The position numbers and the translations under genes are program-made. Positions 3,559 through 37,914 of a stretch of DNA of 64,000 nucleotides are shown piece by piece; position 1 is the first letter of the stretch; the number at the start of each line of letters is the position of its first letter. The stretch comes from Phaeosaccion multiseriatum (taxonomy: Eukaryota > Protista > Ochrophyta, other classes), in the NCBI GenBank assembly GCA_965112735.1, contig OZ218962.1:186001-250000 (forward strand), written 5' to 3'. The notes beneath the pieces were generated by a model. That model was not told the DNA's origin, made no database searches, and saw only the letters and a list, made by a program, of their open reading frames with translations.

Positions 3559-3614
<56 letters not shown>

Positions 3615-6600: not shown

Positions 6601-6650
6601 TGTTGCTCTTCCTCATCTCCCCCTCCCCTCTCTCTCTCTCTCTCTCTCTC

Positions 6651-6685
<35 letters not shown>

Positions 6686-7852: not shown

Positions 7853-8281
7853 TACACAACTGCGTCGCCGATCCACCGAGACCCATTTCCTCCTCTTACG
7901 ATTGGCACTAGTACTTCAAAGAAGGAAAGCACGTGTCACGGCACGCTTCCCGAAGAGCATGTGAGAGGAGTCACAGCTAGCTAGCTAGGGCGTGTCATCG
8001 AATCGATGCACAGACCCCAAAACAGCGGGAAAAAGGAAAGAAAAACTAAATTAATAAAGGGGCGCCTTTTTGCCCAAATAGAACGCGCCAAATTCTCCAA
8101 AATTCTGTGTTTCGTTGGCCCGCCCGAAAAAATATCCAGCTGCAGCTGCACTAATAAAAAGCAGTCTTCGTGCCGTGCTGGAGTAGTAGGAAGCTAGCAC
8201 TAGGAGCAATCCGGTAATAGGGAGTAGAGCAGCGGTAGTAGCAGGAGCGCCACCCATCCACCTTCACTGGTTGTGTGACTA

Positions 8282-8727
8282 ATGGCTCCCCTCTACTATG
8301 GTGGTCTTTTGTTGGCCCTCGTCGGTCTTCAAGGGGACCTGAGTGAGGCGGGCAAGGTGCTCAGGTTCTCGGACGAGTTTGGCACCTTTGACAGTTCCAC
8401 ATGGACCCGTGAGGTGCTGCCCTACACAGTGAACCAGGAGCTGCAGACGTACACCACGGATCCCGCCAACTCCAACGTGGCGAATGGAGTCATGTCTGTG
8501 ACTGCTATCGCTCAGAGCGGTGGGGGCTACACGAGTGCAAGGCTCTCCACGCAAGGGAAAATGGTGCTGAACTATGGCACGGTCGAGGTGGAGGCCAGGC
8601 TTCCGTTTGGCCGGGGGACATGGCCAGGCATTTGGATGCTCTCGGATCAGGAGCCCCATGGAAGCTGGCCTCGCAGCGGCGAGATGGATATCATGTAAGG
8701 ATGAGAATTCCTTCCCTTCCCTCTCTA

Positions 8728-8770
<43 letters not shown>

Positions 8771-10265: not shown

Positions 10266-11433
10266 TGTGCAGATGGCGACCTGCGCACTGCACAGGCATA
10301 CATCCAGCAATCCGGAGGGAGTTGGACCAACTTCGGAAGAAGCACCTGCTCTGTGACGTTCGACAGCTGGTCAAGGTGCTCTGTCTCCGGTAAGTGCACT
10401 CACCCGCACTCTCACTCACTCACTCACTCACTCACTCACTCACTCACTCACTCACGCACTCCGTCACTCATCCACTCACTGACTCACTGCCTCACTCACT
10501 CACGGTTACCCACTCCCTCACTCGCACTGACTATTCACTCACCCCTCCCCTCACCCACTCACTCACCCACCCACTCACCCACTCACCCACCCACTCACCC
10601 ACGCACCATCGCACCCACCCTTCCCGAAGGTGTCATCACCGACGCCAGCAGACCGATCAACTTTGGCATTGCGGCAGGGGCTAATACCGACCACATGCTT
10701 GTGGACTCCGCGCTCCTCGTGACCAACAACCTCCTGGACAACCCCAACTTTGTAAGTGATGAAGCGTAACGTAACGCCTGGGTGGGTGGTCGGATGGGTG
10801 GCTGGGTACATGAAATAGATAAGCCCTCTCCTCTCTCTCTCACTGGCCCTTGCCTTGCTCTCTGTTGCTGACTCACTTTTATTTCCGTGTCACAGAGCGA
10901 GGGCCTGCAGGACTGGAGTACTTACGTGCACTCAGACGTGGGCGCCGTGCTGAGCTCCCCGAACCAACTCAACTTTTTCATTTCGGACCTGGGCGCCGCC
11001 CCTGTGACGTGGAAGGTCGCTGCATATCAAACGCTCTACAACGTGCGGCAGGGAGAGCGCTTCACCTTGTCGGTGGAGCTGTGGACCATTACCTCCGGCT
11101 CCGAGCGGTCGGTTACCCTGTACATCCAGCAGAGCGGCAGCCCTTACATCCCCTTCGGACAGACCGTGTGCACCGTTGTAAACACCCGCTCGCGCTGCAG
11201 TGTCACGGGCACGGTGTGGGACACCTCTCGCCCCGTCAAGTTCGGAGTGAGCGGAGGAGATTCGCTCAGGTGCGTGAGCAGTCCACGGCAGGGGGGAGGC
11301 AGCGGCTTTCTGTCGTCACCAGCTATCACCAGCCCATAATTCAGTTTCTCACCAACCCCCCCTCCCGTTCTGTCTCTTGTCGCTCAGGGACTTCGCCATG
11401 GACAATGCCATTCTGTCCCAGCACTACGAGTAG
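8282..11433 (+). CDS. Secreted GH16 endo-beta-1,3-glucanase (laminarinase-like) with two C-terminal CBM4_9-like modules
   Basis: Signal peptide MAPLYYGGLLLALVGL. GH16 motifs FSDEF, YTSARL, YGTVEVEARLP, GTWPGIWML and WPRSGEMDIM|EHVG (ExDxxE split by intron 8695-8886), then YHTYRLQWTPD, WPFD and FYLIMNLAIGG. CBM4-like starts NLLANPDFENGLSGW and NLLDNPNF|SEGLQDW. Stop TAG at 11431-11433. Confidence 0.9.
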
Positions 11434-12105: not shown

Positions 12106-14375
12106 ATGACGAGGATGTTCGCGGGTCTTCTCGCGGTGCTGCTTGTCCAAGCAGGCACAGCCGAGAGGGAGGTGCCACTCCACGGCGGCAGCAGACGGCT
12201 GCAAGGGTTACCCGTGTTCCCTGTGGTGGACCAGGAGACGTACTTCCTGGGCACCAACCAATCGTCCTACTTAGCCGACCTCAACTTTCACAACTTCTTC
12301 ATCCCCGAGGCCATCTCGCGCTCATTCTTGCACAACCTGGTCAGCCCAGACGGCCTCTTGGATGTTCTCATGAGTGTTGGCTACTTCGCCGACGCGGAGT
12401 TCAGGACCAACGGACTGGACTATCTGCTAAACGAGGGCGCGATAACACAGGGAGAGGTGGGTGCCGTTGCTTCTCCAATATAGTGTTTGGTGGTGGCAAA
12501 GAAGTACTTCGTAGTAAGGAGCAGTTCGATTGTTCTGTGGCTCACGCAAGTCACAGTCCGGTTGCTCTGTTGTCTGTGGTCCAGCCAGCCTGCCCCCCTT
12601 CCGCCCCCTCCCTCTCACCCTCCCTTCTTGTCTTTCCGTAAACCCCTCTCTCCCTTCTCTTGCACTACAGTACACCAGAGTCTTGAGGCAGGTGGGCCGG
12701 GGGTCCTTCTCCCTCCGCGCGCGACCAATTGCCATGTTGGGCCTGCTAGCGGACGTTGCCTCTTTCAATGACTACCTGCTGAACTGGCAGATTGTGGTTT
12801 GGAACGAGGGGACGATGCTGGGTAGAGTGAAGGACATCGCACTCGACTATGACCTGAGTGCCCTTCCCGGATACTCTGCAGCCATCTTCTACGCCAGCTT
12901 GGACTCGTTCAAGCTGTCCTGTGGCGGCTGGTACACTCTCGGCCGCGGCGACACCGCTGAGCCGGAGGAGTTCGCCTTGGTGCCGTTCGAGGACCTGTAC
13001 GACCTGGCCGTTGATTACGTCGGTGCAAACCAACCCCTGCCGGACTACAGCCGCTGGGCGTGGGTGACCTGGTAAGCCCGCCTCCTCTGTCAGCTGTTTA
13101 GTCTCCATTCGCGCAAGCTCCTGTCTCGCCGTGATGTTGCTTGCCTACCTGTGCCTCGCCCTCATGTGCCTCTTGCGCTGGCGTCTTGCCTCCCTCGTCG
13201 CTGACGGACTGACTGACTGACAGACTGACAGACGGACTGACTGCCTGATTGACGGACTGACTGACTTTAGCTGACAGACTGACTTACTGACTGATTGCCG
13301 CCCCTCCCTTCTCCCCCTTGGCAGGCCGGCTAAACCCGTCGGTGAGGGCGAGCTCATCCTCAATGGAGAATTCTCCAACGGTTTGTCCGGCTGGTCTACG
13401 TACGTGCTCAACCAGGCAGCCAACTCCGTCACCGCCAGCGCCGGCCAGGCCCAGTTTGACGTGGCCGCCGCCGGCGCCCTGAGCTGGCACATGCAGCTGT
13501 ACCAGACCATTGTGACCCCTGTCGAGGGAGAGATGTTCACCCTGTCGGCGGACATTCAATCGGTTGGTGAGCCCCGGACCGTGGACATGGTTGTGGCCCA
13601 GAACGGAGGATCATGGACGACCTTCGGGGCCTCCTCGTGCGGCGTCGTGCCGGATGCCGTGACCAGGTGCAGTGTGACTGCGACGGTGACAATTGCCGGC
13701 GCTATCAAGCTCGTCATCCAAGGCGGCGACACCGCTGTCAATTTCTTCGTAGACAACGCCTCTGCCAGCCTCACGGAGGGGCCTGAACCGACGCTACCCC
13801 CCATTGGTACCCCCTCGCCCGCCTCGTCCTCGTCAGAGGATTCAGAACCTCCTGCTGCCACCCCCTCGCCCGTGTCGATGCCGCCCCCTACTCTTCCCCC
13901 AACGCTGGCTCCTGGTGCGGCGACGTCGGTGGAATTTGTCAACGGAGACTTTTCGAATGGTCTGGACGGGTGGGAGGCGTACGTCAAGGGCACAGTAGAC
14001 AACGGCGCCATTACAGCCAGCGCCGGAGAGGTCGAGTTCAGCCTCGACTCTGCGGGGGAGCAGGCATGGTGGATGCAGCTGTTCCAGGTGTTGACTCTCC
14101 CCACGGCAGGGCAGACATTCCGAATGTCGGCTGATGTGAGGGGCCTGAGCGAGACTGACCGGCCTGTGCAGATGTACATGCGCCAGATGGTCCGCCCCTG
14201 GACCACCTTTGCCATCGCCCTGGACGAGTGCGTTGCCACATCCGGCGTCACCACCACGTGCAGCATAGAGGCGGTGATTCCCGATGTGTCCATCCCCGTC
14301 AAGTTCTGTGTGCAGGGAGGGCACGCAGCGGGCGGCTTTGCGGTGGACAATTTGACGCTGACTGTGGTGGCTTAA
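12106..14375 (+). CDS. Secreted protein: unassigned ~220-aa N-terminal domain + CBM4_9-like module + Pro/Ser/Thr linker + CBM4_9-like module
   Basis: Signal peptide MTRMFAGLLAVLLVQAGTA followed by RRLQ. Three exons (about 12106-12456, 12671-13071, 13325-14375). CBM4-like motifs LILNGEFSNGLSGW...WHMQLYQ...FFVDNAS and FVNGDFSNGLDGW...WWMQLFQ...FAVDNLTL. Confidence 0.75.
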
Positions 14376-18463: not shown

Positions 18464-21242
18464 ATGCGCGGGCTGCTTCTCCTTGTTGTAGTGCACGCCT
18501 GCTGTGCATTTCGCCCTTTGCCGAATCCTGCCGTGGCTGCCCACCTCCGTAAGAATAGCCGCCTCGGGTGTGAGATGAGCAAGGCTGCCGTGATGGCAAT
18601 GTCCAGGAAGGATCTGCAGACGCAGGCCAAAAGACTGGGGCTCAAGGCCATTGGAACCAACGATAGTCTCCGCGAGCGTCTCCTGGCGGTGGACAGAGGA
18701 CAGACAGCGCCATTGGTTGCTGCAGCGGCACCAGCCACGACGACGGGAAAGAGAGAAGGAGGAGCCGTGAAATCCTCTGACGCCAAGGTACGATTGCAGG
18801 GTTTGATTATGGGACGCTTGAGCGTGTGTGGATATACGCACTCCGAGAAAAAACGGAGGGAGGTTTACACGAGGGCTCTCTCACACACGCCCCCCCTTTC
18901 CACGCCCTCTCCTCCCTGAATGACTGGATGGTATTGGATGGCCTCCTCAGTCGTCACGGAAGCGGCCGCGCGCGGTTGCCCCCGCCCTGCCACAGCAGAG
19001 CGTGACCGGCCAGGAGAAAATCTTGCCCACCGTCATATACACATACGGGCCGCTGGTGAAGGGCCGTCTGCTGAGACGATACAAGCGCTTCCTGTGCGAC
19101 ATTGACTTCTCATCCGAGCAGCAGCAGGGGGAGGAGGGGGAGGGGGTGGGGAAGGAGGAAAGAGATGGAGAATGGGTAACGGCACACTGCCCCAACACTG
19201 GGCCTATGGTGGGGATGGGTCTAGATACTACGCCGACGGTGTTCCTCTCCACCAGCGACAACGCCTCACGCAAATACCCAAACACGCTCGAAATCGTGCG
19301 GTACGTGAAAGTTGTCGTGCTTGTTCTTGTCGTTAGATTAGACAAGTGGGGCATCTCTGAGTACTGGAATGTGGAAAGAATGATGATGACATGCCCGTCT
19401 TCAATGCAGGGCCTCCACTCTCATCCCCAGGCTCCTCCCTCCCACTCAACTTCCCCACCCCCTTCGTCCTGCGCTGCCCCCCCCCCCCCTTACCTCCTTC
19501 CTCCCCACCCCTGCCCAGCGTGGACAACACGCATGTGGGGGTGCACTCTGCCCTGGCCAACAAGATGGTCAAAGAGGCGCTGGAGGGGGGTTGTCTCAAA
19601 GACGTCGGGGCCTTCCACAGCCTCAGGACGGAGGTCAAAGTGGGTGAGAATGGGATATATGATATATTTGGCTGTCTGTCTGTCTGCCAGCGTGTCAGAT
19701 TTCTTGCCTGCGTACGTACGTGCGTGGTGCATTGGACTGGGGCCGTGCGACGCTGCATTGGGTATGCCTTTACGCCCCTCACTCGGCTGCTCTACTTTCG
19801 TACTTACTGCGTCGATTGCTCCTCTCCCTCCCTCCCTCCCTCCCTCCCTCCCTCCCTCCCTCCCTCCCTCCCTCTCTCTCCCTCTCTCCTTCCCTCCCTC
19901 CCTCCCTGCCTCAGGCGATTCTCGCTTGGATTTCCTGCTGGAGCGGCCGGGGGGGGGCAAAGTGTATCTTGAGGTCAAGTCCGTGACGCTTGCTGAGAGC
20001 ATTCCAAGGGGGGAGAGGGTGGTCACGTCGAGGTGCGCTAGGAGGAGGAGGAGGAGGAGGAGGAGGAGATGGAGGAGGGGGATAAGAAGGAGGGAGGAGG
20101 GAGGAGGGAGGAGGGAGGAGGAGGAGGAGGAGGAGGAGGAGGAGGAGGAGGAGGAGGAGGAGGAGGAGGAGGAGGAGGAAGAGGAAGAGGAGGAGGAGGA
20201 GGAGGAGGAAGAGGAGGAGGAGGAGGAGGAGGAGGAGGAGCAGGAGGAGGAGGAGGAGGGAGGAGGAGGATGAGGAGGAGGATGAGGAGGAGCCTGACTG
20301 AGCGCAGCACCACACGACGAGTGTTATTGTCAGTCATCATTGAGCAAAACACTGACAATGGATGTCCATCCCTTTCGGCGCCTCCCCCTCTGTCCTGCCT
20401 CGCCGGCAGCACGGCGCGACACATGTTGCCGTCCCAGCTCGGAAACCGCCATGACTTCTCTCCTGTCCCCTCACCCTCCTCCTGCCATCCACTGCCATCT
20501 CCTTGTCCCTTTGCACTCAACCCCTTGACTCTCACCAGTCCGTTCTTCAACAGCGAGCCGGCCCTCGGAGGGGTGGAGCAACAGCCGCAGGAGGAGGAGG
20601 AGAAAAGGGCTCTGTTCCCTGACACCAAGTCCGAGAGAGCGCAGAAACACGTCAAGTTGCTGATGAACCTTGCCAGGCAGGAGGGCACGGAAGCGCTGTT
20701 GCTCTTTCTAGTGCAGAGGGGGGATTGCGGAGAGTTCGCCGCCGCTAAGGAGAAGGATCCCGAGTACGCCAGGCAAGGAGGGGATGGCAGTGGTTGGGAA
20801 GGGCGGCGGGGGGGGGGGAGAAGGGGGGACGAGGAGCACGCCTCCCACCCTCCTCGCGCTCTCTCACACACACTCCCTCCCCCTCTCTGCCTCACACACG
20901 CATACGCAGTTTCCCTTCAGTTTCCTTTCAGTTTCCCTTTCTCCCAGAGAGTCTCCAATAATATTCACACGATCTCCCTCCCTCCCTCTCTCTCGTAACG
21001 CACACACACACGCTCTATACGTGACGCACACACACTCACACTCTCCCTCTGCCTCTCCCTCTCTCTATCCTGCTGATGTGTGTGGCTCTGCCTCTCCCTC
21101 TCTCTATCCTACTGATGTGTGTGGCAGGCTGCTGAGAGAGGCTGACGAGACAGGCGTCAAAATACTGCCCTACGCCTGCAGCCTGACACCAGACAGCGGG
21201 GAGGTGGTGCTACAGAAACTGCTCCCTCTAGTCCATCTGTGA
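18464..21242 (+). CDS. sfsA: Plastid-targeted SfsA-family (PD-(D/E)xK) nuclease-like protein with an N-terminal SAP domain
   Basis: Presequence [21 protein letters not shown]-like [27 protein letters not shown]. SfsA motifs across 6 exons: [56 protein letters not shown] and DPEYAR|[10 protein letters not shown]. Confidence 0.9.
20041..20290. repeat. (GAG)n trinucleotide tract in an SfsA intron
   Basis: Visible array; the poly-E, poly-G and poly-R ORFs here are artefacts of it. Confidence 0.95.
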
Positions 21243-22372: not shown

Positions 22373-25250
22373 TTATGCAACGCGCGTGTCGATGGATTGG
22401 TATCCGGACTGGGGGGCGGAGGAAGCAGGGCGGGACACGGGCTGAGCGTTGGGGTCTTCGTGGTCGTAGATCTCCTTCGTCACCCTGGGGGAGTTAGAGG
22501 CGTATGGGGAGAAGAGTAGAGAAGGGAAGGGGGAGAGTACAGAGTCAGGCCGGAGGATATAATGGACATCGTAGAGCATGTCTACTCATGTCTACTGTAT
22601 AGAGAGAGCCCATCCATACAGGCCCCGACAACACAGCCAACAACAACAGCCCCTTGGAGGAGGTGAGCAGCGAGGAGGTGAGGTGAGGAGCTAAGAGGGG
22701 AGGGGAGGTGGGCTCTCTCTCTCCAGTTCGTGCCTCCTTGGGCTGTAAGCAGCGCCAAGCAGCGCCTCCCTCCCCCAACTCACGCGCACACCCACGCACG
22801 CGCACACCCACCCACCCACCCACGCTCGCACGCACGCACTCACCTCGGCGCCAGAATGAGGCACCCGATGATGGTGACTGTGCGAAGCGACACAAGTGGC
22901 GTGTAAGGTGAGTGCGATGGGCACAAACGGAAGAGGAGACGGGGGGGAGGGGAGGGGAGGGGAGGGGAGGGGTTGAGAGGAAGGGGGGGGATGCAGGCAT
23001 GGCATGGGCCAAGCCTTGAGCCTTACTGCTACTGAGCAGGAGGGGAGGCTCCAGCGCCTTACGAGCACAGCACTGTCAATGTCAATGTCAATGTCAATGT
23101 CAATGTCAGGCGCTGACAAATCGCACAAATCTCACAGAGAGAAAGAAGCAGCGCTCCTGCTGGCCCGCTCAAAGAGACCGTCTCTCATTTTGCTCTTTCG
23201 GAGAGAGGATACAGCCCACACACACACATACGAACTTACCAACGATGAGGAAGTACCACACGGCGCCCCATCCGTACGCGTCAACAAGGGGCCCCACAAT
23301 CGACATGCCGAGGGCCGCAGTGATGCTCCCCGAGCCGTTGATGATGCCCGTCACAGTGCCCAGGGCCTTGCTGTTTCCGGCGATGGATGGGTGACCGGCA
23401 AGGTCGGCGGACACGGCAGAGGTGATGATGTTGTTGGGACCGCCCACAAGGCAGCCCATGGCCAGCAGCAGGGGCATGAGAACCGTTACGGGCATGACGT
23501 CTGAGTATTCCGCGAAGAACCACAGCAGGGGGCACAGGAACGAGAGGAAAGACACAATGACGCACGCCCTTCGTCCACCGTAGAGGTCAGACACAAACCC
23601 CACGATGATACCACCGGGCATCATGCCCACATCGTAGAGGGTGGAGATGACGTTGGCCTCGCTGGAGGTGAAGAAGCGGTTGAGGAAGAAGGGCAGCCAG
23701 AAGAAGAGCACGTAGTTGACGAGCTTGAAGAAACCGAAGGCAAGCGCGTATCCCGCCACGGAGGGGATCTTGAAGGCCTGTTTGTTTGGTGAGGGGATGA
23801 GGTGGGAGGGGGGCAGGGGTGGGGGAAGAGATGAGTGAATGAAGGGTGTCAGGCCAGACACATAAGACAGCTCATTCACACTTTGGGTTGATTGTAAGGC
23901 ACGGAACTCGGCCCGCGACAGGGGAGAGACAAGAGGGAGGACAGCGAGAGAGAGACAGAAGAGATTGGACAGAAGAAGAAGAAGAAGAAGAAGAAGAAGA
24001 AGAAGAAGAAGAAGAAGAAGAAGAAGAAGAAGAAGAAGAAGAAGAAGAAGAAGAAGAAGAAAACAAAGAGAACACAGGTACCTCAAGGATGGAGATGGGG
24101 GGGGGGTCGTTGGAGCCGGGAGCCTTGATCTTGCGGGGAGCCTTGCCCTCAGGCTCTGGGCAACCCGCCTCCTCAGGAGAGGCAGGCAGCGTCCACAGGC
24201 ACACGAAGCCCCACAACGCGTTGGTGATGGCAGGGACGAGCACGGCCCACTCGTAGCCAATCCCGCTGGACAGGATGTACGAGGCAACGAGGGCGGCCAC
24301 GACGTTACCGGCGTACTGATGGCAAGTCCAGGTGCCGAAGATGAGGCCTCGGTTCTTGGGGCCGAACCAGTTGCCCATCACGGCCGTACCCACGGGGCCG
24401 CCGATCGCCTAGGGTGGGTGTGAGGGGTGGGGAGAAGGGAAAGTGTGAGTCCGGGCATGCTTACGTTTATTGGGCATGACAGTCGGTCGGGCAGGACATG
24501 AGCAGGACATGACTGTAGTGCTGTGCCCGCACGAGCCGAACGCCTTCGATACGATGCACCACACACACACACACGCACACACACACACCCACACACACCC
24601 ACACACAGCGCTTAGAGGCCGACCCTCCCCCCCTTCGCAATGAATCGAGTAAGAGCGAGTGAGTTGTGGGCTCACCTGGAAGACTCCAAAGACAAGCCAA
24701 TTGGCCAGCAGGAAGGCCGTGCCCAGGGGCAGGCTGTAGGCCGTGAGGTTGTTCCATACAGTGGACCAAACCAACGCTACCACGCACACCGCAGAGCCGA
24801 ACAGCCCAATGGCGATGATGGTGGGGGCGTGGTAGCGGTCTCCCAGAGACCCCATGAAGAAGGATCCCACGGCGTAGGCTGCCATAAAGGCTGTGTCCAT
24901 CTGGGACAGCACCACCTTGCTGATGCCGGCGCTCTTCTCCAGGTCCACCTTGACGTTGGTGTAGCACTTGCGGCTGAAGTGGTTCATGGCGTAGGCCATG
25001 AAGGTGCTGAAGTACACGTTCACTTGCTGCTCGCGGAGCTTGGCGCGTCCGTCCTCCTGGGACGACTGGTTGGGGACGGGAGGTAGGTAACGAGCAGCAG
25101 GGAGGCAGAGGAGGGAGGACAGAGTGGTTAGCTGTAAGTAAGTGCTCCTCCTCACGAGACTTCGTCGTGCCCAATAACTGAAGAACCAGAGTCGGCATTA
25201 TAGCTCCTCTGCCTGCCGCCACAGTTTCGAATCTTCTACACTTCGGCCCA
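22373..25250 (-). CDS. MFS organophosphate:Pi antiporter, SLC37A/GlpT-UhpT family (sugar-phosphate exchanger); start codon uncertain (~25198-25251)
   Basis: Spliced exons give HFSRKCY, GSLGDRY, MGNWFGPKNRGLIFGTWTCHQYAGNV, YALAFGFFKLVNYVLFFWLPFFL, GGIIVGFVSD and ALGTVTGIINGSGSI. The last exon ends ...SGYQSIDTRVA* at 22373. Confidence 0.9.
23971..24060. repeat. (GAA)n tract, intronic
   Basis: About 30 perfect GAA units. Confidence 0.95.
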
Positions 25251-25860
25251 TTCTTCGGACGACAGCTACCGAAGAGCTGGGGGTGGCCCCTCGGCTTCCC
25301 GTTCCCTGCTTCTCTACTCGCCCAAGACCTGCTGTCCTGATCCCCATTGCCCAACGCTCCTCTGGTGGGAGCTGCAGATGCCATCGACGCGCCCTACTCA
25401 GTCTTCGGAAAGCCACACACACTTTTCGGGCTGTCCCTGCCTCCCTTTTCTTTCAGCCCTCGGCTCTGCCTGCGAAGCGAATATTCCCGCTGCTCGCCAG
25501 CCCTGGCCACAAGCATGAGCTCTTTGGGGAAGATGTCAACGCCAAATGCTCCCTCCGCTCTCCCTTCTCTCCCTCGGTTCCTTTTCGACTGCTGGTCCCT
25601 CTCTTGCCTCCTCCTCTCCTCTTACCGGCTGTCCCTTCCCGATAAGGGGCCCCGTAAGGGAATCCTGCTCCTGGTAGCTCGCCATGCTGCTTCTGAGTGT
25701 GCTGCAGCGCCTGTCCTGTCCCCCCTTTGCTCCCCTCTCTCTTCCTCGATTGTCTGGCCACCGCTCAAACAAAAAATCAAACCACGCCGTGCCCCGGGGG
25801 GCCCTCCTTGCCCTCAAAGGGGGCTTGTCATCAACTATCAATTTTCCCCTTTTACAAGCG

Positions 25861-26770
25861 ATGGCGTCCTATCTGAGCGGCGGTAGGGCCGGCTACGAGT
25901 CCGTGGATGGCGTGGACACTGCCGACGTCGCAGGTCTGCCGCACAGTGCTGCGAGCAGCGGCAGCAGCGAGGGCAGCGGGTCGCTCTGGAAGAAGCTGGG
26001 TTTGGGGGTGCTCGCTGTGGTGGCCATTGCGGCTACTGTGCGAGCGGCGGGGAGCAGCAACAGCAGCACCAGCGCTCCTCGGGCTGCCGCTCCGGAGTAC
26101 TCTGGTGCGTGGGTGGGGCGGCGGAGAAAAGGAAGAGGGAGGAGGGCGGTAGAAGATTTTGTGAAGGAGGGAAGTGGAAGGCGGGGAAGGGAGGGAACAG
26201 CATTTGAATTTGCATGTCGCCTGCGCTCAGTGCACGCCGCCGCGCTTCACATCTGCCGCGCACTGGGGTCTATCCTCTCGTGTGCGGCTGCTGGGCCAAT
26301 GGTCCAAAGTTTGCAGCCCCATGTATCGTACTCGCTCGCTCTGCCTTTTTGTTGTTTGCCTCGCGAATCTTGGATACTTTCTCCCGAACATGTTCATCTC
26401 GTAGCGACTTGTTGCAATGAGCGGAAGCACTGGACTCTGACTCTCTCCTCCTCTCTTCCGACTTCGATCCCCCTCTTTCCCTCTCCCTTGCTGCCTCCCT
26501 GTGCTCGGCTCCTCTCGCTTCTCCCCTTTCTCTTTTGTGTCTCTCATCCATCAACAGATGCGGCCTCGAAGACCACCTCTCTAAGCCATAAAGTCACCTC
26601 CGTGGAGGACTCCTCCTCCTTGGAGCACTTCGACAAGGTGAGTACACAAACACACACACAGAGAGAGAGAGTGACACTAGCGAGAGAGGGCTGAAAGAAA
26701 AGGGAGAGGGGAGAGGGAACAGGGCAGAGTGGCACACAGGAGATGCGGCCAGCCCAGCCTATCCGCCCAA

Positions 26771-26804
<34 letters not shown>

Positions 26805-27653
26805 CCTTACCCGGCGCTCTCGGTTGCAATGGGCGTGCGTGTACTTCGGTGCCCAAACAGCTGCCCTAACAACCCCCCACCGCTACCCCACCCCACCCCA
26901 CCCCCCTCAGCTTGGCCGCTACGTGATCCCTAACTACGACACGATCAAGCCCTTCGCCTCCTTCCTCCCCGGCCTGGCGGGCAAGTACGGCACCCCCATG
27001 TGGGCCTTCTACGTGAACCGCGGGCAGATCATGGCCGCCTTTGGTATCGAGAACAAGGAGCACCCCCTGCTCGAGTTCGAACCCGCCAACTTGGCCTATC
27101 AGCAGATCCCAAGGACGGGCTTCAGAACCTTCCTGCGCGCACAGAGAAAAGGTGAGAGGGGTGGGAGGCTGAGGGAGTGGGGGGGTGGCAGGAAGGGTCA
27201 GGGTCAAAGAGAGGGTGAGGGGTGAGAGGGTGAGGGGGTTAAGGGGTGAGGGGCGAGAGAGTGAGGGGGCGTGTGAGGGCGACTTCGGCCCCTTGCTTGA
27301 CACTTGCTCGACAAATTGCTTGACACTTGCTTTGACACTTCAGAGGAGGAGACGGAGTTTGTGTTCGAGCCCTTCAAGGTCGGCACGCCCGACGTATCCA
27401 GGTCCATCTTCGTCGGCATGAACGAGGTGGAGATCCAGGAGGAGGACGACAATGTGGGGCTGCAGACCAATGTGCTGTACTACACCGTGCACGAGGAAGA
27501 GTTCCCGGGGCTGGTCAGGCGCACCACCGTCAAGAACACCGGAGACGTACGTGAGGGGGACTGGGTGGGCGTCGGCGTACGGATGAGCGCACGCACACAC
27601 ACACCAGCCTATTGCTCTCGTGTGCCGCTGTATCTCTCACACACTCTCACTCG

Positions 27654-27684
<31 letters not shown>

Positions 27685-27768
27685 TCCCTCCCTGCCTCTC
27701 CCGTCCGACAGACCCCCATCAGCTTCGAGATGCTCGATGGCTTGGCCCGCCTGCAGGTGTGTGTGTGT

Positions 27769-27809
<41 letters not shown>

Positions 27810-30800
27810 GGTGTGTGTTTTGTTTGTTTCGTGTAGAGCAGTGCGCTAGGCCCAGCCCCAAGGAGTAGGGCTCTTGTAACTGCCGTCTACCTGCACACGC
27901 TCTCCTCTCTCTCCTGACCCCTCCGCTTCTGATCCCTCTTCCGAGGCTTCTCCCTTCTCAATATCAATACTCCCTTCCCAACCAACCTCCCTCCCCCCTG
28001 TCATCCCCTCACCGTTCCCCTCCCCGCCCTGTACCACCAACAGCCCTACGGCGTGTTCGACTACTACATTAAGTCAATGGACCGCACCGTGGAGGCCTGG
28101 ATGACGGCGTACAACATGAACGATATGGGGCATGGCACCCTTCCTTACTACAAGCTTTCCGCCTCCATCGTGGACAGCGAGGTGGTGACCATGATCATCC
28201 CTGGCAACTACGCGCTGGGCTACCTGGAGGACGACAAGACTGGCAAGGACAGCAGCCACGGACTGCTGCCTATGATCGTCGACCCCTCCATCGTGTTCGG
28301 ACAGGTGAGGTGGATAGAGGGAGTGAGGTGTGTGGTGGTGAGGTGGATAGGGGGAGTGAGGTGTGTGGTGGTGAGGTGGATAGAGGGAGTGAGGTGTGTG
28401 GTGGTGAGGTGATGAGGTACTTAAGTGGTGAGGGGGGTGTTTGGGGGTGGGGGTGGAAGATTGTATTGTCTTGTCTTGTCTTGCCTCACGTGTTGGTGCT
28501 CTGCTCCGCTCAGCGGCACTCACTCCCTCCTCCATCCACTGCCATCTCCCTTCCCCTCAGGACACCACCTTCACCAACCCCTTGGGCCTGGAGGCCGTGC
28601 CTCTCTCGGAGCTGCTCAAGAGGAAGCACACCACCACAGGTCAGTCCCTCACTCACTCAGTCAGTCAGGCAGGCAGTCAGTTAGTCAGTCCGTCAGTCAG
28701 TGAATCCGTCAGTCAGTCAGTCGGTCAGTCAGGCAGGCAGTCAGGCAGGCAGGCAGGCAGTCAGCAAGGCAGTCAGTCAATAAGGCAGTCAGTCACTCAG
28801 TCAAGGAGTCAGTCACTCAGTCAGTGAGGTCAGTGCAGTCAGTCAGTCTGGCAGGCAGACAGGCAGGCAGTCACTCAGTCAAGGAGTCACTCAGTCAGTC
28901 AGTCGAGCAGTCAGTCAGTCAGTCAGGTAGGCAGGCAGTCACTCAGTCAAGCAGCCAGTCAGGCAGGCAGGCAGGCAGGCAGTCACTCAGTCAAGGAGCC
29001 AGTCAGTCAAGTAGTCACTCACTCACTCAGTCAGTCAGTCAGTCAGTCAGTCAGCAGGTGGGGCACTGGCGTAAGCAGAAGTGGGACCGAGGCGGCGTCG
29101 TGCAGGAGAGGCCTCGGCTCGGGCTTGCTGTTGCTGTTGCTGTTGCTGTTGCCGTTGCTGCTGTGTGTGCCTGTCCACCCCTTTTGTCCCAGAAGCGGAC
29201 ACGTGTGTAGTGTGTATGGATGGGCTGTCAAGCCGCTCTGGGGGGGGGGGAGGGGGGGGTCAGAGAGCTGAGCTCTATTTATCTTTTGTCAGGGAGGGGG
29301 GGGGGGCTGAGGAGGCGTTGAAGTGAAGCAACACGGGGAGGGGCGACACCGATGGCATGACACGTTGCCGTTACGCTTAAGGAACAGAAGCTGTCAAGCA
29401 AGTCACGCACTTACGTAAGTACTGTTTCTCCTCCCCCCGTCCACTGCCATCCCTCCTCCCTCCCCCCTCCCCCAGGCCGCACGCCCTGCGGATTCGCCGC
29501 CACGCCCATGCTGACACTCAAGCCCGGTGAGAGCACGACACTGACCTCCATCTGGGGCAAGGCCAACACCATGGGAGAGCTCAAACACCTCATCGCTCCG
29601 ACAGTCACCTCCATCGGATTCCTCAGGTACAGGGAGGAGGGGCAGGGGGGAGGGGGGAGGGCAGGTGGGAGGGCATGCCCTGCTGGGGGGAGCTTACAGT
29701 TACAGGAAGTACTTCCTAAGCTTTGTGCTGCGCTGAGGCTCAAGGCGCGTTGGTTTGCCCTTAACGGCTCTTAACGGCTCTTAACGGCTCTGCTCTGCTC
29801 CGAAATTTCACTCTACGTACTCCTCTTACTTTGTTCTCTCTCTGTCCCTCTCTGTCTGTCTGTGTCTCCCTCCCTCTCTCTCTCTCTTGTGTGTTCTCTC
29901 TCTGTGCTCTGCTCACAACAGCGCCAAGCGCACGGAGGCCCAGCAGCTCATTGAGGAGCTCACCAGACACGTCAAGACAGACTCAGGTGAACACAGAAGG
30001 CCAGAGTAGGGCAGAGTAGGGCAGAGTAGAGGCATGCGGGCGGGCAGAGTAGAGTAGCGTAGAGGCGTACAGCCAGCCAGCGGGGACGGACTTGCACAAG
30101 AGACACCCGACACCCGACACCAGGCAGTACCCGCGCTCTCCTGCCTGCCCGCCCTCAAACAAGTGTCCGTATACCCATACGCCTGCCGCTCCCTCCCTCC
30201 CTGCCTGTGTGACTGCCTATGAGTGCAGCTTCCCAACTGTTCGACGGTTACGTGCAGTACAACTTCATGGACAACATGCTCCGCGGAGGGTACCCCGTGC
30301 TGCTCGGAGACCCCAAGAGCCCCAAGGTACGTGACAGATGCGGTTACAGGCGTTTCAGGCGTTACAGGGGGCAGGGTAGTATAAGATAAGGGCAGCATAT
30401 TCATTGACAGCGGTAGACAGAGACAGACACATAGGTTGCTCATTCTGTAACGCCATTATGTAACTGCCTTCCTCCCTCCTCAGATCTACCACACCTTCTC
30501 TCGCATCCACGGCGACTTGGAGCGCGACTACAACTACTTCGTCATTGCGCCCACCTACTACTCGCAAGGCCCCGGCAACTACAGAGACGTGAACCAGGTT
30601 GGTACGGGGGTGGGGCATTCACTCCACTCGCGCATTCACACACTCACTCCCTCACCCCCTCCCTTACTTGCTCACTCACTCCCTGACTCAATCTCACCCC
30701 CGCACCCACCCACTCACTCACTACATCCCTCACTCTCTCCCTCACTCACCGACTCTCCCCTCTCCTCCTCCCCTCCCCTCCTCCCCTGCTCTGCTGCTTG

Positions 30801-33003
30801 CCCTCCAACAGAACCGCCGCAGTGACGTGGCGTGGCAGCCCCTGGTGGGCGATTACAACATCCAAACCTTCATGAGTCTGCTGCAGGCCGACGGTTACAA
30901 CCCCATGACTGTGCAGAGTGTCGTGTTCAACATCACCGACCAGGACAGAGGTGAGGGGTGGGGGAGGGAGGGAGGGAGGATGGCAGTGGAAGGAAGGGTA
31001 AAGTAAGTAGGGAAGAAGAAAAGGTAATTGGAACTGAAACTAACCTTTCGTTGTGTGTGCGTGTGTGCGTACTTGTGGCAGTGTACGACATCGCCTCGAA
31101 GGTGGTGCCGGAGGAGAATGTAACCGCCCTCGCTGGCCTCATTCAGGTGAGGCAGTCAAAGGCCGGGATGGATAGATGGAAGGAGAAATGCGAGGGAGGA
31201 AGGGAGAAGGAAGGAAGGGAGGGAGGGAGGGAGGGAGGGAGGGAGGGAGGGAGGGAGGGAGGGAGGGAGGGAGGGAGGCGAGGGGTTGGAGGGGGGATCG
31301 GGGCTCTTGAGCTTAGCAGGGAGGGCTGAGGTCAGCCCTTGCACCGGGGGGGGGGGGGGGCTTCGTTTACCCCCCCCCTTCAATGCAGCTCCTTCTAGGC
31401 TCCTCCATCTGACTTGCTCTGTGCTCTTTCCTCCCCCCCCCCCACCCCTCAGCCCCCCTTCCGCCCCGGCACGCTGTTCATGGAGATGAAGGACGCAGGC
31501 CTGCTGCAGGAGCTCAGCGTGAGCAAGGAGACATTCCTCAACCTCATCACCGAGGCTGCCGTGCAGATCCCGCAGGTAGGGGGGGGGGTGTCAGGACAGG
31601 GACAGATTGGACGAGTATGGAGTGGTTTCCAGGACTGCTTGCGTTCCTTGCATGCGTTTCATCCCCTCCTGTGCCCTCTGTACCCGCACATGCAATCAAT
31701 CGGCCAATCATTCAGAGCCTACTGCAGCTACTAACTCCTCTTCCTCCCCATACACCTCTACTCTTCCTCCCCATACCCCTCTACTCTTCCTCCCCATACC
31801 CCTCTACTCTTCCTCCCATACACCTCTACTCTTCCTCCCACACACCTCTACTCTTCCTCCCCATACGCCTCTACTCTTCCTCCCCATACACCTCTACTCT
31901 TCCTCCCCATACACCTCTACTCTTCCTCCCCATACACCTCTACTCTTCCTCCCCATACACCTCTACTCTTCCTCCCCATACACCTCTACTCTTCCTCCCC
32001 ATACGCCTCTACTCTTCCTCCCCATACGCCTCTACTCTTCCTCCCCATACCCCTCTACTCTTCCTCCCCATACGCCTCTACTCTTCCTCCCCATACGCCT
32101 CTACTCTTCCTCCCCATACACCTCTACTCTTCCTCCCCATACACCTCTACTCTACACCTCTACTCTTTCCTCCCCATACGCCTCTACTCTTCGTCCCCAT
32201 ACGCCTCTATTAGGCGGACTTCTCGCAGGGTTTCTGGTGCGACCACTGGACGTACACGCAGGACTTGTTCGAGTCGTACCTGTCCATCTTCCCCGAGAAG
32301 CTCGAATACCTCCTGTTTGACTCCAGCCCCGTGCCCACTTACCTCAGCCCCAACAAGGTCAGTCAGTACCTGGTGTCAGTCAGTTAGTCAGTCAGTTAGT
32401 CAGTCAGTCAGTCAGTCAGCCAGTCAGTCAGTCAGTCAGTCAGTCAGTCAGCCAGTGAGTCAGTCAGTCAGTCAATCTGTCAATCTGTCAAGTCTGTCAG
32501 TCAGTCAATCTGTCAATCTGTCAAGTCTGTCAGTTTACTCGGGTGGGTCGCTGGGTAATTCAGTGAGGGTATGAAGGAGTGAATATGTGCGACCTCGTAG
32601 ATACCCCCCCCCTTCCCACATGCTTCTTACAAACCACCCCTCCCCATACGCCTCCACCCAACGCCCCACTCCTCCCTCAGGTGGTGCGCCGAAAAGAGAA
32701 ATACGTGTTGGTCGACGCCGGCTCCGGTAAGGTGCGACAGCTCGGTATGAACGTTGCCGACGGCGACAAGACGAGGCAGCTCGCCATGAACGCCAACGAC
32801 CCCAACGGCGTGTGGATGTGCGTGGAGGGCACGCAGGAGGGGGGCACGGACGCGCCTGGCTCGGATCCTTTCAGCAGCCTCGGTGTGCCGACGGGGATGG
32901 GCAAGTGCGACGTGTTCTATCAGGTGAGGGCAGGGGGAGGGGAGGGGGGATTTATTGACTTACCTGAATCAACCTAAGAATTACGTGAATCAATCGAAGA
33001 ACT

Positions 33004-33041
<38 letters not shown>

Positions 33042-36000
33042 TGAGGCGTGAGGGGGTGCTTAGAGCGGTGAGGAAGGAGCGTAGGGGCTCATGTTTGCTT
33101 GCGGGCTTTCCTGCTCCCCTCTCTTGCTACTGCCCCTCCAACCCTCCTCCCTCTTCCGTCTTCGTACCCCCCTCCCATACATATCCCTATACCCTATACC
33201 CCCATATGCCTATGCATACCCTTTGCCCTATACCATCATACCCCATACCCCCATACCCTTTATCCCCATATGCCTATGCATACCCTTTACCCTACACCCT
33301 CATACCCTATACCCCTATATGCCTGTGCATACCCTCATATCCCCATATGCCTATGCATACCCTCATACCCTATACCCCTATATGCCTGTGCATACCCTCA
33401 TACCCTATACCCTCACACCCCGTACCCCATGTCTTCAGTCGGTGGCCTCCAAGTACACGATGCTTGTGGCAGTGAAGTTCGCCCTTCTTGACCCCCTGGG
33501 CATGGCCATCGAGATGGAGGGCGGCAAGCCGGGATGGCTCGACGCCCTCAACGGCCTGCCCGCCCTTTTCGGCAGCTCCATGCCGGAGATGTACGAGCTC
33601 CACCGTTACACCACCTTCATCCGCACCAGCATCGACAAGCTCGGCAGGTGAGGCATGAGGCAGCAAACAGGCAGCGCAGGGAAGCGCAGAGAAGCGGCGT
33701 ATGGGCGTAGAGTGAATTGGTGTAGCCTACCCTTCTCCCCCACCGCCTTGTCTCAACGCTAACTCTGGCGGCCAAGCTGCCCTCAACTCACCCACGTACT
33801 CACCCACCCATTCTCAACCTCTTTTCGTCCCCCTTCCACCCATTCCTTCCTCATCGACTGCCATCCCCTCCCCTTCTCTCCCTTCCCTCCCCATGGACTG
33901 CCATCCCGTTCTGATGCAACAGGGACGTGGATGTGTTCGAGGAGCTTGACGGGCTGCTCACAGGACTCGGGGACTGTCTGGACACCTACTCAGAGGACGC
34001 AGACGACTTCGCCTACTGGAACTGCTCCGCCACCGCCAGGGAGAACTACAGAGATGTGAGTGGTTAGAGGCATACGATGAGACAGGTTGGAGGCATACGA
34101 GGAGACAGATTAGAGGCATACGAGGAGACAGATTAGAGGCATACGAGGAGACAGATTAGAGGCATACGAGGAGACAGATTAGAGGCATACGAGGAGACAG
34201 ATTAGAGGCATACGAGGAGACAGATTAGAGGCATACGATGAGACAGATTAGAAGCATACGAGGAGACAGATTAGAGGCATACGAGGAGACAGATTAGAGG
34301 CATACGAGGAGACAGATTAGAGGCATACGAGGAGACAGATTAGAGGCATACGAGGAGACAGGTTAGAGGCATACGATGAGACGGGGAGGACTGCAGAGAT
34401 GTGAGTGGTGGTTAGAGGCATACGCACTCACCTCTCAGCTGCTTAGAGTGTTTGTTTGTTCGAGGGGGGGCACTGACTTAAGTGACTTGGGGGGCACTGA
34501 CTTAAGTGACTTGGTGGGCACTGACTTAAGTGACTTGGGGGGCACTGACTTAAGTGACTTGGGGGGCACTGACTTAAGTGACTTGGGGGGCACTGACTTA
34601 AGTGACTTGGTGGGCACTGACTTAAGTGACTTGGGGGGCACTGACTTAAGTGACTTGGGGGGCACTGACTTAAGTGACTTGGGGGGCACTGACTTAAGTG
34701 ACTTGGGGGGCACTGACTTAAGTGACTTGGTGGGCACTGACTTAAGTGACTTGGGGGGCACTGACTTAAGTGACTTGGGGGGCACTGACTTAAGTGACTT
34801 GGTGGGCACTGACTTAAGTGACTTGGGGGGCACTGACTTAAGTGACTTGGGGGGCACTGACTTGAGTGACTTGGGGGGCACTGACTTAAGTGACTTGGGG
34901 GGCACTGACTTAAGTGACTTGGGGGGCACTGACTTAAGTGACTTGGGGGGCACTGACTTAAGTGACTTGGGGCACACACACACACACACACACACCGCAG
35001 TCACTGCAGACCACGCGCACACGCTCCCTTTCCCTCTCTCTCTCCCCTGCCCATATGCCTGCCCATATGCCTGCCCATATGCCTGCCTGCCTGCCCGTAC
35101 GCCTCTAACCCTCCCCCCTCCTGCCTCTGCCTCTTCCAGCTGACGAGGCTGACCCTAACGGGCAAGACGGTGTCGTGGAGCGCGAGTGACCTTGTGGACC
35201 TGCTGGACCGTATGCTCGAGAAGATCAATCAGGGCATCAAGAGGGCCTCCGAAGCCAACGATGGGTACCCTCCCTCCTACTTCAGGTACAGAAGTCAATG
35301 AATGGTACATAAGTCAATGGTACACAAGTCAATGGTACACAAGTCAATGCGTGTGTGTGTTTGTTTGTTTTGGGTGTGTGTGTATGTGCGTGCGTGTGTG
35401 TGCGTGCGTGTGTGTTTTCGCGTGGTTGAGTGTGCGGGCACTACAAGTAGACAATGAGAGGCGCAGATCCCCAACCATACCCAATACCTCACACCTGTGA
35501 CGACTAACACCCCTTACTCCTGTGATCGCCATGCTGTATCGAAAACCTCTTACTCCTGTGATCGCCATGCTGTATCGGAAACCTCTTACTCCCGCCAGGT
35601 GGGAGGTGACTGAGTACGAGCTCACAGGCACAGAGGACGCCCAGCTGAGGCCCTACGTCATCGCCAAGGTCAGGCATATGGGCAGAGATGGAGGCACATG
35701 GGCATACACATTGAAAGGCCTTGCTTGTGGTTGGGCCTTGGCTTGCGGTGGGGGGGGGGGGGGCTCCTGTGATGATTATCTTTGTTGGAATTACCGTCTG
35801 ACTTCTCGAGTGAGGAAAATCACAGCTGGCTGCTACTTCTGAGGACCTACCCACCCACCCGTCCAACCACAGCCCAACCACACGCAAGGCACACACTCTC
35901 GCCAGTCTCTCCTCGCACACACGCACACACGCACGCACTCACCCCACTGCCCCCCTTCCCACCTTGGCTCTCCCTCTCTCTGTTGCTGTGCTGTGGTCTG

Positions 36001-37914
36001 CTGTGGTCTGCTGGCCTCTCTTTGCCCTGCTTGGCCTTCCACAGGGCTTCGAGCCTTTCGTGCTGCCCCTCTTCCTCGAGGGCTCTGTGCGCAACATGAA
36101 GGTACGTGAGGGGAAGGGGTCGAGAATGTCGAGAATGTCAAGAATGTCGAGAATGTCGAGAATGGCAGCATATGGCACGATGAGAATTCATTCGATCTCT
36201 GACATGACGTGTCGATGGAGGCCTTTCCCTCCTCCCTTCCTCCCCCCCTCCCTTTCTCCCTCGCTCTCTCTCCCCCTCCTCCCTTCCTCCCTCGCTCTCT
36301 CTCCCCCTCCTCCCTTGCTCCCTCGCTCTCTCTCCCTCTCCCTCCCTTGCTCCCTCGCTCTCTCTCCCTCCCCCTCCCTCTTGCTGTGCTGAAGTGCGCC
36401 TCCTTCCTCGCTCTTGCGAGTCATTCCATTCTTGTTCCTTACGCGTAATGCCTCGGCCCTTTCTGTAACCACCATACCACCAACGCCTGTACGTGCCTCA
36501 CGACAGGTGCTGGACACCATCGACGAGAAGCGCGAGCTGTTCGAGACCACCAAGGCGGGCCCCCTGTACGACAAGATCCTGGCCATGTACAAGATTAGCG
36601 AGAACTTGGGGGAGACGACCTTCGAGATTGGCCGAGTGCAGGGCTTCTCGCCGGGCTGGCTGGAGAACGAGTCGAGTGAGTAGAGGGGGGTGATGCGGAG
36701 AGGAGAGGAGGGGAGGGGAGGGGAGGGCAGGCAGGGGAGGAGCGGTGGGGGAGGGGAGGGGAGGGGAGGGGAGGGGAGATAAATTCATGTGGGGCATTTA
36801 TGTTGACTGACGGCACGCTCCTCCTCCTCCCCCTCCTCCTCCTCCTCCTCCTCCTCCTCCTCCTCCTCCTCCTCCCTCCTCCCTCCCTCCCCCCCCCCTT
36901 CCCTTCCCTGCCTCCTCCCCCCCCCTTCTAGTCTGGCTGCACATGTCCTACAAGTGGTACTTGGAGATTCTCAAGGCAGGTCTCTTTGAGGAGTTCTGGA
37001 ACGAGGTGTCCACAGGCGTCGTGGTCTTCATGAACCCCGAGATCTACGGCCGCTCGCCTCTTGAGTGCTCCAGCTTCCTCGCCTCCAGCAGGTTAGTATG
37101 TGAGCGAGGTTGGGTCACGAGGTTGGGTCTCACCCTCCCTCGCTCCCTCCCTCCCTCCTTCCCACTCACGCACTCCCTCCCCTCCCCTCCCCTCCCCTGC
37201 CCTGCCCATCCACTGCCATCGCCCTCCCGAACTGCAGATACATGGACTCCTCCCTGTGGGGCGGCGGTTTCGTGTCCCGCCTGTCCGGCTCCACTTCGGA
37301 GTTCATGAGCATGTACAACTTGATGATGTACGGCCCCACCCCCTTCACCACCAACGCCAAGGGACAGCTCCAGCTCCAGCTGGTGCCGGCCCTGCCCGGT
37401 TGGTTGTTCAAGGAGGACGGCACGCTGACCTTTACCTTCCTGGGCATGGTCAATGTCACATACCACAACCCAAGCGGGGTAAGTTGGGCTGGCTGCTGCT
37501 GTATCACCAACTGCTGCTGCTGCTGAGGATGGGGCTGGGGAGGGGAATGGATGGAAGGAGAGGGGGAGGAGGGGAGAGCAGAGCAGAGCAGAGCGGAACG
37601 TCTTCCTGTTTTTCTGTCCTTTGATTTGCAGCCAATCCAATCAGTCCATCCACGGGAAGGGCTGAAACGGAATTCCCTCCCTCTCCTTTTGGTTGTACAT
37701 ACTTAACCTCGCCATCTTATCTCTCCACTGCCATTCCCATCCACTGCCATCCCCCCCTTCTCAGAGGGACACGTGGGAGGACTCAATGGAAGTGCTGCGC
37801 ATCTCTATGGACGACGAAGAGGAGGTCAGGGGATGGGAGCACGTCACTCACGACGCCGCTCAGAGGATTCGAGAGGGGCTCATCAGGAACCTCGACGTCT
37901 TCTACAGGGCCTAA
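25861..37914 (+). CDS. GH161-family beta-1,3-glucan phosphorylase with an N-terminal membrane anchor (~25 exons)
   Basis: Spliced motifs [25 protein letters not shown]...FG...EFEPANLAY...[50 protein letters not shown]|[50 protein letters not shown]|[20 protein letters not shown] and [13 protein letters not shown] match my recollection of GH161 (GH94/GH149-related) phosphorylases. Hydrophobic segment [15 protein letters not shown] at ~25996-26040. Confidence 0.88.
31735..32210. repeat. 23-bp minisatellite (TACACCTCTACTCTTCCTCCCCA)n, intronic
   Basis: About 20 slightly variant units running up to the splice acceptor at ~32212. Confidence 0.9.
34063..34385. repeat. 23-bp minisatellite (TTAGAGGCATACGAGGAGACAGA)n, intronic
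   Basis: About 14 units directly after a splice donor. Confidence 0.9.
34465..34972. repeat. 24-bp minisatellite (GGGGGGCACTGACTTAAGTGACTT)n, intronic
   Basis: About 21 near-identical contiguous units with no spacers. Confidence 0.95.

Follow-up and report, generated by a model that had tools for sequence, protein, structure and literature searches.

The window analysed here, a 64,000-nucleotide stretch of intron-rich eukaryotic DNA (~58-60% G+C) from the ochrophyte Phaeosaccion multiseriatum (contig OZ218962.1, positions 186,001 to 250,000), carries a head-to-head pair of genes that encode an SLC37A1/2-like carrier and a GH161 beta-1,3-glucan phosphorylase. Our preferred reading, to which we give a probability of about 0.4, is that the pair is a co-transcribed, evolutionarily retained module that would mobilise beta-1,3-glucan of the vacuole, be it laminarin or chrysolaminarin, by phosphorolysis. 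Taken singly, the genes are typical of known families; the novelty lies in their conserved pairing, in the topology deduced for the enzyme, and in the occurrence of GH161 in a brown alga.

Few carbohydrate pools of the ocean rival laminarin and chrysolaminarin in size, and the pair bears on how algae retrieve their glucose from the vacuole. GH161 has been proposed earlier for vacuolar chrysolaminarin, without topology or exporter (PMC6484121, PMC7965971); in published work it is a possible phosphorylase whose compartment is not placed and whose product exporter is not named. A full-text literature search found no paper on this gene pairing, on a membrane-anchored eukaryotic GH161, or on a vacuolar exporter of glucose-1-phosphate (Glc1P), in line with an earlier sequence-only reading of this DNA, which had called the pairing undescribed to its knowledge. 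The analysis yields three testable statements, namely a type II lumenal enzyme, a specific candidate partner carrier and a common promoter.

The divergent gene pair

The gene models were built from homology and from assembled contigs of run X5. This run had been guessed to be 'DNA?', yet its contigs have introns removed at GT-AG boundaries and behave as transcripts. It is in effect the sole RNA evidence for this genome region (window 23000-28500), as runs X1, X2 and X4 are unspliced DNA. The pair consists of the following features:

22373-25637, minus strand: carrier gene, SLC37A1/2-like (OPA family, major facilitator superfamily (MFS)), from Pfam, homology and X5 transcript contigs
25638-25830, no strand: common divergent promoter region, between the outermost 5′ reach of the transcript contigs of both genes
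25831-37914, plus strand: GH161 beta-1,3-glucan phosphorylase gene, coding sequence 25861-37914, from colinear homologues, X5 contigs and the open frame

Position 22373 is the final base of the SLC37 stop codon and 37914 is the final base of the GH161 stop codon. The spliced carrier contig (X5 record 26) extends to 25637, and that of GH161 (X5 record 27) begins at 25831. No more than 193 bp thus separate the divergent mRNAs, and the pair has a bidirectional promoter in the strict sense, with head-to-head genes whose 5′ ends are less than 1 kb apart. The coding starts are ~0.66-0.76 kb apart (~0.7 kb), the exact value depending on the carrier start codon, a distance that fits the ~0.6 kb given by the sequence-only reading for the gap between the 5′ ends; the transcripts approach each other much more closely. 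Both mRNAs are present in this one transcript-like sample, with contig depths of 440 and 241, which are of the same order and a weak measure. DNA contigs of both X1 and X2 cover 24613-26761 without a break, so that the neighbourhood of the two genes is not an assembly artefact. Gene models, homology and transcript contigs agree that both genes are real, intact and divergent, as the sequence-only reading had them.

Carrier and phosphorylase families

The stop-free minus-strand pieces within 22373-25200 encode an MFS carrier, and the resulting model has five exons and ~470-480 amino acids. Its exons, all on the minus strand, are:

24676-25637, minus strand: leader and first coding exon
24082-24408, minus strand: second exon
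23240-23777, minus strand: third exon
22844-22877, minus strand: fourth exon, 34 nt
22373-22484, minus strand: fifth exon, including the stop

The X5 contigs confirm the intron 24409-24675 and the joining of 23240 to the 34-nt exon. Pfam MFS_1 matches three of the exon pieces (E 5.6e-16, 5.4e-12 and 7e-11). When the largest exon was used as query, hundreds of algal proteins were recovered at 60-72% identity; identity to algal proteins annotated as 'sugar phosphate permease' or 'OPA SLC37A1_2' was 60-75%, and homologues with JGI-type names are listed as 'OPA family glycerol-3-phosphate transporter-like MFS transporter 1/2'. The orthologous carrier of Chrysoparadoxa australica (P0312) was compared with solved structures; its best match was rice Os08g0156600 (1e-55), a G3Pp-type protein that we take to be OsVPE2, closely followed by human SLC37A2 (5e-54), whereas the matches to GlpT (5e-11) and SLC37A4 (6e-10) were far weaker. 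The top NCBIfam models of the carrier all belong to the OPA family (PgtP subfamily, UhpT, GlpT and UhpC), with scores far below the bacterial cut-offs. Judged by these sequence relationships, the carrier is of the SLC37A1/2 or plant G3Pp type within the OPA family (TC 2.A.1.4), and the SLC37 name proposed from sequence alone was correct. In the tree, the carrier is placed near a set from Ectocarpus, Tribonema, Vaucheria and Chrysoparadoxa. Its H-F-S-R-K motif in the first transmembrane segment (TM1) aligned to H-M-T-R-K of the rice protein, and in TM7 all of 13 algal homologues keep the lysine of F-F-K-L-V-N-Y. These basic residues may be the equivalents of R45 and R269 of GlpT, to which the match is too weak to align.

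In the RNA-supported 5′ exon of the carrier (24676-25637), the stretch from the upstream stop (25198-25200) to TM1 lacks an in-frame ATG, and the five ATGs of the leader (25516, 25384, 25347, 25251 and 25198) are out of frame or terminated. An enumeration of GT/GC-AG introns that could splice in a start gave weak candidates only (for example ATG 25196-25198 with a GTTCTT donor), and no such joint occurs in X5. This leader points to translation from a non-AUG codon, to a minor splice form that escaped detection, or to translational control of the upstream open reading frame type. The carrier intron at 23965-24073 holds a (GAG/CTC)n run.

The GH161 model comprises 25 exons with an ATG at 25861 and encodes 1209 amino acids without an internal stop:

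Exons 1-9, plus strand: 25861-26104, 26558-26635, 26909-27151, 27344-27546, 27712-27756, 28044-28304, 28561-28639, 29476-29626, 29922-29986
Exons 10-18, plus strand: 30229-30326, 30484-30597, 30812-30950, 31082-31146, 31453-31575, 32214-32357, 32681-32923, 33439-33647, 33923-34055
Exons 19-25, plus strand: 35140-35285, 35599-35668, 36045-36101, 36507-36675, 36932-37091, 37238-37478, 37765-37914
33535-33543, plus strand: catalytic loop W798-L799-D800, aligned to G-W-Y-D-A-L-N-G of PDB 9qqk (GH161A) and 9h8v

The first five introns match X5 joints (after 26104, 26635, 27151 and 27546, and flanking the 45-nt micro-exon 27712-27756); the other junctions are GT-AG and were chosen by homology. Homologues were gathered with one 78-amino-acid GH161 exon as query, which yielded 583 representatives at E values up to 1e-3, and the model is colinear by tblastn with four homologues of 1050-1220 amino acids (P0001, P0002, P0011 and P0038). 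Long tandem repeats that look in-frame lie within the introns at 28640-29200, 31600-32210 and 34376-35000; they include hexanucleotide-type 'SQSV' runs, a unit of ~66 nt and a unit of 24 nt, and they produce large spurious open reading frames on both strands.

Because GH161 has no Pfam model, ten GH161 exon pieces gave no Pfam match, and the family was therefore assigned via homologues and solved structures. The nearest homologue, P0001 of C. australica, is 52% identical to the window protein and matches PDB 9qqk ('GH161A') at 3.3e-228, against 2.8e-11 for the GH149 structure 6hq6, to which it aligns in the N-terminal domain only. The window exon 33448-33648 alone matches only the GH161 structures 9qqk and 9h8v (E 4.7e-20). 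Membership in GH149 or GH94 was rejected; the NCBIfam GH149 model scores the enzyme at 84.8 bits against a cut-off of 1150. The GH161 assignment of the sequence-only reading was thereby confirmed.

An alignment of 159 homologues has 109 columns with a conservation of at least 97%; the window protein keeps 106 of them, including the motif G-W-L-D-A-L-N-G, and the remaining three show conservative changes (L>M, L>M and G>A). The loop W798-L799-D800 corresponds to W623-N624-D625 of THA_1941 of Thermosipho africanus, a mapping made by motif only, with THA_1941 outside the alignment; the residue roles there come from mutagenesis, and mutation of D625 inactivates the enzyme (bioRxiv 2025.04.05.647330). 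With its catalytic residues intact, the phosphorylase looks active. End-to-end colinearity with homologues of ~1050 amino acids points to the four-domain GH-Q architecture of an N-terminal beta-sandwich, a linker, an (alpha/alpha)6 barrel and, at the C-terminus, a jelly roll. No eukaryotic GH161 has been expressed successfully so far, and an attempt with the eukaryotic enzyme OcP1 failed (PMC6484121). A FastTree analysis of 160 GH161 sequences placed the window protein as sister to that of Chrysoparadoxa, both within a fully supported eukaryotic clade of 43 members.

Anchor, sorting motifs and linkage

Both proteins carry candidate targeting signals at one end:

25861-26104, plus strand: GH161 exon 1 with N-terminal tail, G-Y-E-S-V (25891-25905), two lysines and the hydrophobic core of a putative signal-anchor (~25996-26040), from X5 splicing of 26104 to 26558 to 26909 and from hydrophobicity and flank charge of the clade
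22391-22405, minus strand: G-Y-Q-S-I near the carrier's end (11 residues from the C-terminus), a candidate tyrosine sorting signal of the lysosome/vacuole type (GYxxPhi), from the gene model

An origin of exon 1, with its transmembrane segment, in another gene is ruled out, as it is joined to exons of the catalytic part in a spliced X5 contig. Anchors were scored as a single N-proximal segment with a Kyte-Doolittle mean of at least 1.9. Such a segment occurs in 28 GH161s, all within the 43-member eukaryotic clade, and in none of the 117 bacterial-type sequences (0/117). The clade members without it mostly begin inside or just past the segment and look like truncated gene models. The eukaryotic tails before the anchor are 18-63 amino acids long, and the flanks of the segment carry mean charges of +2.2 (N-side) and +0.07 (C-side). 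A YxxPhi motif is found in 20 of 27 tails, usually within the first 17 residues, compared with a mean of 5.0 and a maximum of 12 in shuffled tails. Such a pattern marks a type II protein, so that the tail of eukaryotic GH161 would lie in the cytosol and its catalytic body in the lumen. The word 'transmembrane' is absent from the founding paper of the family (PMC6484121), and a stramenopile survey found few transmembrane domains and drew no conclusion on location (PMC7965971); the anchor was recognised by neither, and the topology deduced from it is new.

For the carrier, the comparison covered 35 algal homologues whose tail after TM12 measures 15 amino acids or more. YxxPhi stands 8-14 residues from the C-terminus in 27 of these 35 and is preceded by G in 22; shuffled tails averaged 5.4 and never exceeded 12. 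Both predicted signals resemble known ones. LAMP1 has its GYxxPhi near the C-terminus, as does the carrier, and type II vacuolar or lysosomal enzymes such as yeast alkaline phosphatase Pho8 combine a cytosolic N-tail bearing a motif, a single signal-anchor and a lumenal body, as GH161 appears to do; the likenesses drawn here come from sequence.

The sequence-only reading had named synteny across stramenopiles as a check and a lack of conserved linkage as a refutation; in a comparison of the loci of both genes, the linkage proved to be conserved in two other lineages. In C. australica (L001), an MFS_1 gene of 505 amino acids lies 337 bp upstream of GH161 in divergent orientation and is the ortholog of the window carrier (55-83% identity per exon by tblastn), with different intron positions. 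The locus of Ectocarpus sp. CCAP 1310/34 (L009) has the carrier ortholog P0340 and, at a distance of 482 bp, a divergently transcribed annotated gene of 1218 amino acids without a Pfam match, located at 1-9518 of the locus (minus strand; contig CACKRE030000180.1). This protein is colinear with residues 80-694 of the window GH161 within the fetched flank (best high-scoring segment pair 5.6e-26), has an N-terminal anchor like that of the window protein, and is much more divergent from the latter (35-55% identity per exon) than the Chrysoparadoxa GH161. A published survey found no GH161 in E. siliculosus (PMC7965971); by its sequence, the Ectocarpus gene is a GH161, so that a brown alga does have the family, which is new. 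Only the pair is colinear with the window in Chrysoparadoxa and Ectocarpus; the flanking genes differ, and the pair proteins of these two lineages are only ~35-65% identical to those of the window. No motif common to the intergenic spacers of the window, Chrysoparadoxa and Ectocarpus was found beyond chance, shared 7-10-mers being at chance level.

The head-to-head pair thus recurs in two other class-level lineages and is unlinked in the other genomes examined; it is restricted to certain lineages rather than general among ochrophytes. Most simply read, it originated no later than the common ancestor of the brown-alga-line classes, was kept in at least three lineages and was broken in Tribonema. 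Locus L091, with only 217 bp upstream of the carrier, is uninformative for linkage, and P0233 proved to be bacterial. A different recurring GH161 neighbour was seen in two highly fragmented assemblies, GCA_024449835.1 (L008) and GCA_024449895.1 (P0240 contig), both of which have an anchored GH161 without introns at ~6-9 kb upstream of a gene for GH116 (glucosylceramidase-type).

Proposed cycle, alternatives and other features of the window

As to where the proteins reside, how they are oriented in this species, what the carrier moves and which way the flux runs, we infer the following cycle. Both proteins would be sorted by their tyrosine motifs to the membrane of the storage vacuole. Lumenal GH161 would use inorganic phosphate (Pi) to release Glc1P from glucan, and the carrier would swap one lumenal Glc1P for one cytosolic Pi, restoring exactly the Pi used. 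Such a closed 1:1 cycle would deliver phosphorylated hexose to the cytosol without ATP and preserve the energy of the glycosidic bond. Given the relatives of this species, the glucan is as likely to be laminarin as chrysolaminarin. Transport of Glc1P by the carrier, if it occurs, would add a new substrate class to the SLC37/OPA carriers and provide a handle for engineering the turnover of algal storage glucan. The sequence-only reading had put forward a lumenal phosphorylase served by a Pi/Glc1P antiporter; its families, divergence, linkage (in two further lineages) and topology signals stood, and its reach shrinks to a restricted set of lineages. The stronger statement, that a tonoplast SLC37-type carrier is the first Glc1P:Pi antiporter, dedicated to a lumen-facing anchored GH161 in a conserved eukaryotic two-gene module, we regard as rather doubtful. 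Were it true, ochrophytes of the brown-alga line would phosphorolyse laminarin inside the vacuole and export sugar phosphate, and the vacuole would have its own counterpart of the triose-phosphate/Pi shuttle of plastids.

Known systems resemble this proposal in part. The bacterial GH161 enzymes (PapP of Paenibacillus polymyxa, THA_1941, and PDB 9qqk/9sr2 'GH161A') share the family and the catalytic apparatus, and their gene clusters likewise lie beside transport genes (ABC systems) and GH94 (PMC6484121), as in the bacterial locus L006. Unlike the anchored window protein, however, they are soluble and cytoplasmic and lack an N-terminal anchor, and their neighbouring transporters import the oligosaccharide substrate rather than Pi or product, whereas the algal partner is an organophosphate:Pi exchanger under a eukaryotic bidirectional promoter. 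The nearest mechanistic analogue is SLC37A4 with glucose-6-phosphatase in the endoplasmic reticulum (ER), where an SLC37 antiporter serves a lumen-facing enzyme and exchanges sugar phosphate against Pi at 1:1. That system differs in its direction (glucose-6-phosphate (Glc6P) in, Pi out), in using a hydrolase and in having unlinked genes, and SLC37A4 is no more than a distant relative of the algal carrier, as the structure matches showed. The closest animal homologues are SLC37A1 and SLC37A2, and mouse Slc37a2 resides on the secretory lysosomes of osteoclasts (PMC9945426); these differ in that their described substrate is Glc6P and that no partner phosphorylase or Glc1P transport is known for them. 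The plant VPE/G3Pp proteins (OsVPE1/2, GmVPE1) are equally close homologues, located in the tonoplast and responsive to phosphate status, but net vacuolar Pi efflux without sugar-phosphate exchange is reported for them, and plants have neither GH161 nor vacuolar beta-glucan stores.

Several observations weigh against a dedicated module. Glc6P/Pi exchange is the activity described for SLC37A1/2, and Pi export that of plant VPEs, so that a sugar-phosphate substrate of the carrier is not assured, and we know of no report of Glc1P transport for the SLC37 family. The carrier family is widespread in organisms without GH161 (animals, plants), head-to-head pairs tend to persist for structural reasons, and the expression support comes from one sample in the form of contig depths. 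Because the anchor of the window GH161 has balanced flanks (+1/+1), the orientation argument rests on the clade and not on the window protein; the 'lumen-facing' phosphorylase of the sequence-only reading accordingly gains from the type II anchor, the positive-inside polarity and the YxxPhi tails found across the clade, but not from the flanks of the protein itself. The GH161 tails of Chrysoparadoxa and Ectocarpus have Y-Q and no canonical Phi at +3. According to the passage citing it in PMC6484121, GH161 activity of Ochromonas was purified as a soluble enzyme, which would need proteolytic release to fit the anchor model. The linkage is also absent from Tribonema minus, whose loci for GH161 (L002) and the carrier (L010) lie on different contigs with other neighbours, from Heterosigma akashiwo, Pelagophyceae sp. 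CCMP2097 and Chrysophaeum taylorii, and from two further assemblies. A metagenome scan with an algal SLC37 alignment gave 80 loci, mostly transcripts of 1.5-2 kb, and the 11 longer ones had no GH161 near the carrier. Because the linkage is missing in most genomes examined, any coupling would not require adjacency.

These points bear on two alternative accounts, each of which we consider rather unlikely and of which the first is a serious rival. By one of them, the carrier is a VPE-like vacuolar Pi transporter that sets lumenal Pi from the same membrane and carries no Glc1P; glucan phosphorolysis would then be tied to phosphate homeostasis, and Glc1P would exit otherwise or be dephosphorylated in the lumen. 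The rice protein that best matches P0312 corresponds to LOC_Os08g06010, an MFS gene responsive to phosphate starvation (PMC5253468), OsVPE1/2 are tonoplast Pi efflux proteins of the G3P-transporter family as described where PMC11933872 cites Xu 2019, and the sorting motifs would suit a tonoplast protein equally well. The carrier is, however, equally similar to human SLC37A2, a Glc6P/Pi exchanger; exporting Pi from the compartment of a Pi-consuming enzyme gives no obvious reason for one promoter in three lineages, and phosphorolysis in the lumen would lose its energetic rationale if no exporter of sugar phosphate worked beside it. By the other account, there is no functional coupling: the bidirectional pair was kept since splitting a common promoter is costly, and the carrier is a general Glc6P/G3P:Pi exchanger located elsewhere (ER, Golgi or plasma membrane). 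This would suit the unlinked state in most GH161-bearing genomes examined, the spacers of three species without a conserved motif, the wide occurrence of the carrier family without GH161, and the prediction of SLC37A1/2-like proteins of Phaeocystis at the cell membrane or ER (PMC11697108). Yet the pair has outlived the replacement of both flanks in three lineages despite the low identity of its proteins, the same kind of tyrosine sorting motif is found on both partners, and the biochemical fit is specific, with a lumenal enzyme that would consume Pi and make sugar phosphate beside a Pi/sugar-phosphate exchanger.

Much less probable still is a module that runs in reverse, which the sequence-only reading had also allowed: the carrier would import Glc1P, and lumenal GH161 would elongate beta-1,3-glucan in a synthesis or priming that is independent of UDP-glucose. 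Algal vacuoles are generally rich in Pi, and a Pi-rich vacuole favours phosphorolysis. GH161 is reversible and makes beta-1,3-glucan from Glc1P in vitro (PMC6484121, bioRxiv 2025.04.05.647330), but the synthesis of storage glucan in stramenopiles is assigned to tonoplast GT48 synthases (PMC7965971).

Three further genes of the window were recorded. About 8 kb past the 3′ end of the carrier gene, a plus-strand gene matches Pfam CBM_4_9 at 10872-11336 (E 7e-4) and 13275-14372 (E 9e-14). CBM4 modules can bind beta-1,3-glucan; this gene shows no sign of belonging with the pair and is not syntenic in L001 or L009, the Chrysoparadoxa and Ectocarpus loci. An open frame at 18924-20270 (plus strand) contains SfsA_N and SfsA (sugar fermentation stimulation protein), a mostly bacterial family. 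At 53131-54120 (minus strand), a Pfam RRF (ribosome recycling factor) domain (1.4e-61) follows ~165 residues, and the protein is probably targeted to an organelle.

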